A stretch of 63,306 nucleotides of DNA, counting the filler, from Olpidium bornovanus S191 (lineage: Eukaryota; Fungi; Olpidiomycota), in NCBI GenBank assembly GCA_017911155.1. It is 33 parts of 33 records of this genome, joined end to end, with 100 filler letters (N's around TTAATTAATTAA, not from the genome) between each part and the next. Parts side by side here need not be neighbours in the genome. Positions count along the whole stretch, not along the records: positions 59,783 to 63,306 come from JAEFCI010006214.1; 32 more parts are not named here. One strand, given 5' to 3'. Positions within the stretch are counted from its first letter, which is position 1. Every line of letters starts with the position of its first letter. This document shows, one piece after another, positions 59,783 through 63,306 of the stretch. A model generated the notes under the pieces. It did no database searches. It was not told the origin of the DNA and saw only the letters and a program-made list of their open reading frames with translations. Position numbers and translations under genes: made by a program.

Positions 59783-60965
59783 CATGAAATTCCGCTCAGA
59801 CTGGAAGGCCTCCTCGTCGACGCCACCGCTGGAGTAAAATTCCAGGTCGTCGAACGTCGGTCTGTCCCCCTGAGACGCAGGGTCGGAGCGGCCGATGTTC
59901 CCGGTGAAAAGTTCAGCCAATCTCAAGTCTGAATGACGAGCAAAGTCCATAGCTGTCCGGCCTTTGGCTGTCTTTGTGGATGTCTTCGCACCGTACTCCA
60001 CGAGCATCCGCGCAAACGCGTAATGGTTGTTCTTTGCGGCCCACTGCAAGAATTGTCAGCGATGGTATTGACCAGCGCAGCAGTAGAGGAAGAGATTGTA
60101 AAACTGTCAGTGACAATTTTGATAAGGGCAATAGCAGTTGAATAGCTGCGCATTCACACGGCAAGAATGGCGTAAAAACCATAACGGCTGGTTGGAAATC
60201 AACATACCGTTAGTGGGGTCCAACCAACTGAGGTCGGCAAACGTAAAGTCAGCGAAGAGAGCACGGGTACATTTTTCAGCGGGCTTTTACGAGCTCCGGC
60301 ACAGGCGGCCGCCTACCGAACGTAACGCGGGCGGCTCGCCGCGACTCACACTTGTCCTGGATGTCCGGGTCCGCGCCTGCTTCGAGCAACAGAAAAGCGA
60401 CTTCCATGTGACCAAAGCAGGCGGCGTAAATGAGCGGTGCGGAGCCCTCCTCGTCCTTCGCGTTGAGATCGATGAACTCCCGTGGTACCTGATTCAGGAT
60501 CCTCTCCACTCTCCTTGCGTCGCCGTTACCGACTGCCCGAGAAAGGATGCACCGCAGGCGCTCGATCCTCCCGTCAACGGGGATGTCCTCTCGGCGAGCA
60601 AGCTCAGCCTCGTCGACGGACTCATCGAAGAGTACGTCCAGCTCGCCCACAGGGCCTGTCGCGGAGGCGGCATTCGAGGACAGCAGCGCCAGGAACTCGG
60701 CATCGGCGGGCTCGAGGGGCGCGCTCAGCATCGAAGACGACGGCGGCGGCGACACGACGGGCGGGCCAAGCGGGGCCGGGAAGCCAACGACGCCTCCGCG
60801 GTCGTCCGCCGGCGGCGGGACGGGAGGCGGGTCATAGCCGAGCTTCCTGGACAACGACACGGGTTCGCCGCGCAGGGGTAAACGGGGCGGCGCGGCGCCG
60901 TTGTCGGCGGCGGCGGCCGGGTCGGCTGCGGAAAGGAGGAGGTCGGGGAGGTCTGCGGCGAGCAT
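59783..60965 (-). CDS. Ankyrin-repeat protein of the fungal ankyrin + DIL-domain family, N-terminal part; multi-exon, 3' partial
   Basis: RLRCILSRAVGNGD..IDLNAKDEEGSAPLIYAACFGH...AGADPDIQDK|..GWTPL..|WAAKNNH...KTAKGRTAMDF...FYSSGGVDEEAF. The DIL domain is inferred from family memory, not seen. Confidence 0.85.
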
Positions 60966-61536
60966 TGCAGCGAGCGAGCGCGCCACGGGCGGGGGGGGCG
61001 TGCGCGCGCCCGGGGGGGGAGGGGGCCGGGTCACGGAGCGCCAGGGACACGGAGGCGGTAAGGGGGGAAAAAGGGGGAGGAACAGGGGGGAAAGGAGGAC
61101 GAGGAGGAGAAAGCCACGCGTGCTCAACTCTCTCCGCCCCGCCATCCTAGCACCCTCCCCTCCCCCCTCCCCTCCCACGCGGCTTCGCGACAAGGGCAAT
61201 CCATCGAATACACCGCTGCGACAGCTGCGAAAGGCTGCACTTGCCCAAATCCCAACAGGGTGCCCGTGAGTGGCAGGATGCGGTTGAAACCTGGGCAAAT
61301 TCCTGGGAAAGGGGGGGGGATGGGCGATATTTTGCGCCAATTTTAGGGATTGGCGTTGGTTTTTGGTTCGCTTGGCTCGGAGCGCCTGGTTTGATGCGGG
61401 ATGAGACGTTGGCCGACGTGCACGGGACTCGAGGACTAGGACGATTCATGTTCAACCAAGTTTTTACCGAGTTTGTCTTGACGGCCAATGCGCTGTTACT
61501 GGCCTCAAGGTGCCTCTGTACTTGGGGGTCAATACA

Positions 61537-61667
61537 AACGTTGGGTGTCAATGCACGGTCGCTTGCGTTGAGTGTCATTGCACTTAAATTAAGTTGAGGG
61601 TTTGCAAATGATTGACGTTGGGTGTCATTGCGTGGTCACTGACGTTGGGTGTCAATGCACTGTCGCT
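61537..61667. repeat. 27-bp minisatellite, about 5 copies (consensus GACGTTGGGTGTCA[A/T]TGCACxGTCGCTT)
   Basis: Units at 61537, 61564, 61591 (degenerate, 23 nt), 61614 and 61641. Confidence 0.88.
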
Positions 61668-61768
61668 TAACTCAACATTGCATTGTGCGCAGAGGGCCTC
61701 GGTTGACGTTGCTGAGCTTGTGCCGCCTTTTAGAGCCCTCCCCCCAGGTGCTGAACATTCTAATGCGA

Positions 61769-61907
61769 CTTAGCTGGCCAATATGAAACAACAAAAATCT
61801 CCTTCTTGAGCAGTTTCGCAGACCAAATAAGAAGAATCAAATCTCGTTTTCAGTTAGTTTCGCAGATCAAATTAGAAACCGAGTAACATTCGCTTAGCTG
61901 GCCAATA
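61769..61907. promoter_or_regulatory. A-B-B-A direct repeats in a divergent promoter; unit A contains CCAAT
   Basis: CTTAGCTGGCCAATA at 61769 and 61893; AGTTTCGCAGAxCAAAT at 61812 and 61856; lies between the ankyrin gene (-) and MICU (+). Confidence 0.5.
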
Positions 61908-62320
61908 GAAACAAAATAAAGTTCGCTCTTTTGAACCTTTTTGCCACTGGCCAAAACCTGGATAACAACCAGGGCGACCCCCTTGCCTTTACTCTGGAGT
62001 CGAAGCGGGTGAGCTTCGGTGAGACGAAGAGCGAGCGGCATCCGTAAAGCGAGCGCGGCGGGACGGAAAAGTTTTACTCGAGTCGAGGTCGCGAACATTG
62101 GAAACTGTTGTTTTCCGAGGGATGTTGTGTCGAGTCCGCGCGGGAGGCGGATGTGCTCTGGCACGGCGTCGCCAAGGGGCCGCTCGCGTCGCGATCACGG
62201 TGAGATCCCATCGCTCCTTCTTTCCCCACTCCGCCCCTCCGGGCGCGCCGCGCCGTCGCCCCGAGCATCCCGCCCACGTGCAGCAAATCCCCGCGCGGCG
62301 CCTCCCGCCTCGCGCGCACG

Positions 62321-63306
62321 ATGTCCGCTGCGAACCGGCCGGCGTTGGCCGCGATCCGCGCCGCGTTGTCGGCGGCGGCGGTCGCGGGGAGCGCGGGCGC
62401 GCACCGCTGCGCGCAGCCCGCCTCCGCCTGCCCGCGGGCGGACGTTCGGTCGTCACCGCCGTCGTCGTCCGCGGCGGCGGGGTCGTGTCGTCCTGCACCG
62501 CCGCCGGCGAAGCGATCGAGCCCGGGCGCGAATTACCACGCTGATCGCCGGCGGTGGCGCTCGTGCGCGGTGCCCCCGTGGGATCTCTTCCTCGCCGGCC
62601 TAGCCGTCGTCAGCGCCGCGGCGGCGGTCGGAGCCGCGTGCGGGCCGCGGCGCGCGGCCTGCGAGGAGCGCGCGGAGTCGGTGAGTGCGTTTGCTACTGG
62701 CAATCACAACGGCCGACAGACGCTTGGCGAGCCGTGTGTTCGTCGGCGGCCAAAAGCTGCATCGGAAGTCCGTTGAGTCTGCCATCCTTGAACTGTGACG
62801 TCTCCAGCGGTTTTCGGCATGGAAGCAACACAAGACCGGAAGATACGGTACGACTTCGGTGCCCCTACCCGGGAGTCCGGTCTCTGACAATAATCCCCGT
62901 CGATCGCCTTCAGGTTGAGATTTCCCGCTGTCCCTCCATCCCAGAAAACCGGTTGAGATTCTACTCCCACCCGCTGAAGGTGTTCAAGTATTTCTCCAGC
63001 GTCGTCCTGCCGGACAGCGATGGCCAACCAGTGTACTTCATGACACCGCAGGACTTCGTGCGAAGTCTAGTCCCCTACAACGAGGTTGACAGTGCTCGGC
63101 ACGCGCAAGGCGGCACGACCTGGTCTGCGGATGTCGTTATCAGCGGGGCGGACCCCGTCGATCGGAATCCGGACGCAGACGGTGACATGAAATCTGGCAG
63201 GGACAGCGTCGAGGCGTCGTTGGAAAGTCCAGAGCTGAGGAGAGCTCTCGACTTCTTTAAGCTCGCAGACACGAACGGCGACGGCTTGATTGCTTACCAG
63301 GAATAC
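62321..63306 (+). CDS. MICU1: MICU-family mitochondrial calcium uptake regulator; exons 62321-62680, 62808-62847, 62945-63306; 3' partial
   Basis: Ala/Arg-rich presequence and TM, then RYENRLRFYSHPLKVFKYFSSV...VYFMTPQDFVRSLVP...LDFFKLADTNGDGLIAYQEY (canonical EF-hand). Both introns GT-AG and in phase. The catalytic exon is absent from the ORF track. Confidence 0.9.

Follow-up and report, generated by a model that had tools for sequence, protein, structure and literature searches.

Does Olpidium bornovanus possess a MICU-type gatekeeper of the mitochondrial calcium uniporter? The question is raised by the last piece of a 63,306-nucleotide stretch of DNA (the window), in which parts of 33 records of one genome are joined end to end. 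This piece (59783-63306, 61% G+C) is identical, over the 118 nt compared at its start, to JAEFCI010006214.1 of the Olpidium bornovanus S191 assembly (GCA_017911155.1; 13,695 contigs, 29 Mb). Only an ankyrin gene is annotated on JAEFCI010006214.1. We find that the same contig very probably also carries, unannotated, the 5' part of an expressed and correctly spliced MICU1-type gene, for whose product we infer a pore-capping mechanism.

The distribution of MICU among fungi has been surveyed before. Pittis 2020 (PMC7423614) put the co-occurrence of MCU and MICU at 99% of 1156 eukaryotes and found MICU, EMRE and animal-type MCU together in 3 of 776 fungal genomes, those of the early-diverging Allomyces macrogynus (MICU: AMAG_11987), Catenaria anguillulae and Spizellomyces punctatus. 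Olpidium, sequenced later, was not part of that set. An earlier note on this DNA, made from the sequence alone, had given as background that MICU is absent from Dikarya and reported among fungi chiefly from a few zoosporic lineages that also keep animal-like MCU and EMRE, and the published survey agrees.

Features of the contig piece that carries the MICU gene, in window coordinates.
Feature	Position	Strand	Remarks
Ankyrin-repeat gene	59783..60962	-	Divergent neighbour; exons 60350-60962, 60208-60227 and 59783-60043; cut by the other contig end
MICU 5' UTR	62059..62320	+	5' limit is the start of the X3 transcript contig
Exon 1	62321..62680	+	120 codons; presequence-like N-terminus, then hydrophobic segment; donor GTGAGT at 62681
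Predicted membrane/hydrophobic segment	62579..62644	+	Residues 87-108, in exon 1
Intron 1	62681..62807	+	127 nt, GT..AG; joint in X1 and X3 transcript contigs
Exon 2	62808..62847	+	40 nt: RFSAWKQHKTGRY plus 1 nt
Intron 2	62848..62944	+	97 nt, GT..AG; joint in X1 and X3 transcript contigs
Exon 3	62945..63306	+	Cut by contig end; 121 residues
MICU N-domain core	62944..63081	+	ENRLRFYSHPLKVFKYF...FMTPQDFVRSLVPYN; ungapped against human MICU1 115-160
Linker before EF-hand	63082..63228	+	Lineage-specific; residues 52-75 of exon 3 predicted disordered
EF-hand loop DTNGDGLIAYQE	63268..63303	+	Canonical, 12 residues; first EF-hand of N-lobe

Judged by its sequence, the gene is a member of the MICU family, of the MICU1 type. 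Exons were searched and folded individually, never as the joined protein. Among the 177,635 sequences of the PDB, exon 3 matched human MICU1 first (E 7.4e-10), its residues 1-46 aligning without gaps to MICU1 115-160 (6k7y_I). The second-ranked match was Dictyostelium MICU (9K6M, 3e-7), and thereafter only generic EF-hand proteins were found. A profile built from the fungal clade, which includes the window sequence, reverses the order of the first two: the Dictyostelium discoideum protein is its best solved match (1e-83), followed by MICU1 (5e-69), MICU2 and MICU3 (both about 1e-50), Aralar (3e-25) and calmodulin (1e-15). The earlier note had named a comparison with MICU1-3 as the check on its reading, and these scores bear that reading out, with MICU1 placed 144 bits ahead of Aralar.

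Exon 3 was also compared with 1.84 billion cluster representatives, yielding 188 matches with a best E of 1.5e-12. All of the named top matches are MICU-like proteins of zoosporic fungi (Sorochytrium, Powellomyces, Blastocladiella britannica, Coelomomyces, Allomyces and Caulochytrium), and animal MICU1 and protist homologues rank below them. No near-identical representative was present among the 1.84 billion in this exhaustive search, and word-based protein searches did not recover the product of the gene at full length. An identical protein was missing because the public record has no annotation for the MICU part. Leads from the protein Atlas were of low recognition and no more specific than EF-hand or Aralar-like. 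No Rfam family matched the piece, and neither an exact degenerate-pattern scan nor a protein-guided scan returned related metagenome contigs.

The individual residues agree with the family assignment. Exon 3 contains the motif YENR[IL]RxYSxPxK[IV]FxYF ... [FY]MTxxDF[IV]RS, and eleven of its residues (E1, N2, R3, R5, P10, K12, F14, Y16, F17, M33 and D37) are invariant in 25 of 25 MICUs. In the ungapped alignment to MICU1, R5 and R40 of exon 3 stand at human R119 and R154. The EF-hand loop is fully canonical, with D1, N3, D5, G6, I8 and E12 in place. Its score against Pfam EF-hand_1 (E 0.0016, 18.2 bits) lies under the cut-off of 25.4 because the contig end cuts the hand; the window contains the first EF-hand of the N-lobe, whereas the partner hand falls past the end of the contig, as would the C-lobe hands and the C-terminal helix of a complete MICU. 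The MICU1 signature that the earlier note had read here (ENRLRFYSHPLKVFKYFSS and FMTPQDFVRSL) and its canonical EF-hand are thus both upheld.

Upstream of this domain, exon 2 supplies the W-K-x-x-K-x-G-x-Y lead-in seen in fungal MICUs. The first 40 residues of exon 1 include four basic residues and no acidic ones, and its best 19-residue window on the Kyte-Doolittle scale (LFLAGLAVVSAAAAVGAAC, residues 89-107) has a mean of 2.22. Exon 1 is therefore predicted to encode a mitochondrial presequence and one hydrophobic segment.

The fold of exon 3 was also predicted. In the AlphaFold (AF2) model of exon 3, the N-domain has pLDDT values of 75-96 per ten-residue block, with three of the four blocks above 90 (residues 11-40), and the helix leading into the EF-hand is also modelled with confidence. 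The linker at residues 52-75 falls below 50. The nine best Foldseek matches are all MICU1 N-domains, superposed over 43-45 residues at an rmsd of 1.7-3.9 Å. With a superposition as short as this, about 45 residues, their E-values stay weak, the best being 4e-3.

The window shares its overall architecture with human MICU1 (4NSC, 6K7Y, 6WDN): a leader, a hydrophobic segment, the N-domain and an EF-hand lobe. R119, K126 and R154 of the human protein are kept, K126 as K12 of exon 3, whereas R129 is replaced by K. The first N-lobe hand, degenerate in animal MICU1 (..GECGLISFSDY..), is canonical in the window, as it is in fungal, glaucophyte and other protist MICUs.

The likeness to zoosporic-fungal MICUs is closer. 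These share with the window the N-domain motif with 'SHP', the W-K-x-x-K-x-G-x-Y lead-in and a canonical first EF-hand (KLADT[DN]GDGLI), and are 44-62% identical to it over the matched stretches; direct comparison with the Allomyces and Blastocladiella proteins gave 40-44%. On these values Allomyces and Blastocladiella were set aside as the source of the piece; Fonticula, Acanthamoeba and GC-rich algae had been considered too, and the match of the contig to the Olpidium record speaks against all five. Two lengths set the window apart. Its leader is longer, placing YENR at about residue 133 rather than at 63-132 as in the other zoosporic-fungal MICUs, and its linker before the EF-hand, predicted to be disordered, exceeds those of other fungal MICUs by some 27-40 residues.

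Reasoning by analogy with MICU1, we propose that the Olpidium protein would be imported into mitochondria and would cap and release an MCU pore. The N-terminal presequence and the hydrophobic segment would bring it to the intermembrane space. There the N-domain, through its equivalents of R119 and R154, would cap an animal-type MCU pore at the ring of aspartates in its mouth and keep the pore closed at resting Ca2+. Binding of Ca2+ to the EF-hands would then relieve the block. In the human protein, R119 and R154 bind the aspartate ring of the MCU DIME motif, and MICU2 lacks both residues (PMC6347451).

The earlier note had predicted a full MCU-EMRE-MICU uniporter for this organism, possibly linked to flagellar motility. 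The channel gated in this way might instead consist of MCU and MICU only, as in Dictyostelium, whose uniporter operates without EMRE, and in Fonticula alba. Supplementary Data 1 of Pittis 2020 lists both of these organisms, the latter a member of the Holomycota, with MCU and MICU and without EMRE. The window itself has few basic residues before YENR (AWKQHKTGRY), in contrast to the EMRE-binding KKKKR run that precedes the N-domain of human MICU1. However, each of the MICU-bearing fungi in Pittis 2020 also had animal-type MCU and EMRE, and EMRE is small and readily overlooked. We regard an EMRE-independent channel as unlikely, though a serious contender.

We next consider whether the gene belongs to Olpidium. 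The DNA behind the assembly came from non-axenic zoospores washed off cucumber roots, and its contigs were sorted into the bin by tetranucleotide composition and fungal hits (PMC7865070). Because the assembly is a metagenome bin from non-axenic material, the assignment to Olpidium rests on the binning by the depositors and carries some risk. In our gene tree, exon 3 falls in a clade (support 97/89) with all of the named zoosporic-fungal MICUs and some metagenomic ones, separate from animal, glaucophyte and stramenopile sequences. Within this clade, and with 81 columns available for the window row, exon 3 lies outside the sub-clades of Blastocladiomycota and of Spizellomycetales with Caulochytrium, and so in no named sub-clade. 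The 'SHP' signature after YENRxR is common only to the window and the zoosporic-fungal clade. The earlier note had named a non-fungal contig as a ground for rejecting its reading; identity to JAEFCI010006214.1 and a clade whose named members are all zoosporic fungi favour a fungal one.

A genuine MICU could still have reached the bin from another eukaryote, a chytrid or a protist, washed off the cucumber roots. The bin was drawn by composition from a mixed assembly of 187 Mb, the tree leaves the place of exon 3 within the fungal MICU clade unsettled, and two raw RNA runs (X19 and X22) with the same species label as the transcript-bearing runs have no read anywhere on the piece. Against this, the depositors discarded contigs without fungal hits. 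A position outside the known sub-clades, with no match to a named species, is what would be expected of a lineage without any other recorded MICU. Moreover, several studies contain runs with transcripts at least 99% identical, all filed under a single organism label. Mis-binning therefore appears improbable. As to the two blank runs, the species label may denote the host, or a sample in which the fungus is not always present.

MICU-like proteins at NCBI also come from Blastocladiella (including B. emersonii), Sorochytrium, Coelomomyces, Powellomyces, Geranomyces, Gaertneriomyces, Caulochytrium and Synchytrium. A further close relative was observed on a 51-kb ENA metagenome contig (L001, 3001-4287). 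This gene is intron-less and stands in a compact row of p450, GCD14, Pam17, MICU and mRNA triphosphatase genes; the eukaryote that carries it is represented in three ENA assemblies.

The Olpidium gene is interrupted by two introns in the part seen here. Its start at 62321 is the first in-frame ATG downstream of an in-frame stop. Exon 1 (80% G+C) ends in phase 0 at 62680, and exon 2 ends in phase 1 at 62847, before the donor GTACGA. The acceptor of intron 2 reads ..CCCAG/AA at 62944/62945. The codon that this intron splits is G plus AA and therefore encodes Glu. Both ENRLRFYSHPLKVFKYFSS and FMTPQDFVRSL are encoded by exon 3, from 62944/5 onwards, and the final complete codon of exon 2 specifies the preceding Tyr, so that the spliced product reads ...KTGRY-ENRLRFYSHPLKVFKYFSS... 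across the joint. The position 63306 is the end of the contig and not of the gene. The window codes for about 254 of an estimated 500 codons, in the first three exons.

Both joints, 62680 to 62808 (127 nt skipped) and 62847 to 62945 (97 nt skipped), are present in Logan contigs from runs X1 and X3, which belong to two independent studies. The in-phase splicing claimed in the earlier note is thereby confirmed from transcripts. A single X3 contig, 2010 nt long, reaches from 62059 through all three exons and on for 986 nt past the window, which indicates an mRNA of about 2 kb. Since runs X19 and X22 gave no reads, the strand and the ends of the MICU transcript are read solely from the GT..AG orientation of the introns.

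The transcripts also bear on whether the gene is functional. It could be a decaying, non-functional MICU remnant, given that it is unannotated and seen in part and that an upstream ATG overlaps its start. But exons 1 to 3 keep an open reading frame, splicing and expression are seen in several studies, and the key residues are kept. Within the MICU exons the RNA contigs depart from the assembly at one position, G>A at 63171, and the change is synonymous (Pro, CCG to CCA). A remnant is thus very improbable. The upstream ATG lies near 62120 in the 5' UTR and opens a 141-codon frame (62120-62544) that runs over the start at 62321. This frame may be a chance product of GC-rich DNA, or it may act as a translational brake.

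The Ca2+-binding N-terminal domain of Aralar and citrin (4P5X, 4P5W) is distantly related to MICU and has its EF-hand lobe arranged as in the window. In Aralar and citrin this domain is fused to a carrier domain; neither protein is known to have a leader of about 133 residues with a hydrophobic segment, and Aralar is not known to have a YENRxR motif. A feature-based Atlas match to an 'Aralar1-like fragment' cluster (0.91), the presence of citrin and Aralar among the weak structural matches and a contig end ahead of where the Mito_carr part would lie might suggest that the exons encode such a domain, from a mitochondrial carrier of the Aralar or SCaMC type. This is scarcely credible. Exon 3 matched no Aralar, citrin or SCaMC chain of the PDB up to E = 1, so that its best matches are not the carriers by which the earlier note would have been refuted. 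The profile scores Aralar far below MICU1, and the domain comes after a leader of 133 residues that contains a hydrophobic segment. The 986 nt of mRNA that remain (at most 328 codons in the transcript contig) fit a MICU of about 500 residues and appear too few to complete an Aralar N-domain and add a carrier to it.

The remainder of the piece is occupied by the ankyrin gene and an intergenic region. The N-terminal exon of the ankyrin gene is 100% identical to the NCBI entry 'MAG: ankyrin repeat-containing domain protein, partial [Olpidium bornovanus]'. As modelled by MAKER in the public assembly, this gene runs into its first intron (…DIQDKCESRRAARVTFGRRPPVPEL/WAAK…; - strand, 60044-60349). 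In transcript contigs, introns at 60228-60349 and 60044-60207 flank a micro-exon of 20 nt (60208-60227), and the resulting reading, …DIQDK-FGWTPLT-WAAKNNHY, is a regular ankyrin repeat.

We also observed an X1 contig (61697-62680) that joins 61804 to 61937 with CT..AC ends; on the minus strand these are the GT..AG ends of an intron. The same contig continues through the MICU 5' UTR and exon 1 to 62680. This suggests that a minus-strand transcript, either an antisense RNA or a long ankyrin leader, overlaps the 5' end of the MICU gene. The intergenic region contains direct repeats, with ACGTTGGGTGTCAATGCAC-type motifs at 61538, 61615 and 61642, three 47-nt copies within 61538-61688 and two further two-copy repeats within 61769-61920. 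Low-level transcript contigs cover part of 61538-61920. Immediately upstream of where the ankyrin transcript starts, G-rich and C-rich tracts (61007-61181) include 24-nt arms that are 79% complementary.

Several considerations define what a MICU1-type gene in Olpidium adds. Pittis 2020 (PMC7423614) resolved the 'fungal MCU paradox', and because MICU was already known from zoosporic fungi through that work, the gain is incremental and does not amount to a new kind of system. The finding adds one well-placed fungal lineage to the known distribution. No MICU was previously on record for the Olpidiomycota, and no paper in the literature we searched mentions Olpidium together with 'uniporter'. The gene also provides a concrete Olpidium sequence to clone for reconstitution.

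The placement of this lineage gives the gene its interest. Phylogenomic analyses make Olpidium the sister of all non-flagellated fungi (PMC7865070), and so their nearest relative among zoosporic fungi and the last such branch ahead of the terrestrial fungi. A MICU gene in Olpidium shifts the latest date at which MICU can have been lost, on the way to Mucoromycota, Zoopagomycota and Dikarya, past this split. This suggests that MICU, and presumably its channel too, survived up to the split between Olpidium and the non-flagellated fungi and was lost later. It is possible, at somewhat less than an even chance, that Olpidium keeps the whole animal-type uniporter of MCU, EMRE and MICU, and that this was later lost on the stem branch on which the flagellum was lost. 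If so, the shared loss would suggest that the zoospore stage and the gated entry of Ca2+ into mitochondria are functionally linked.
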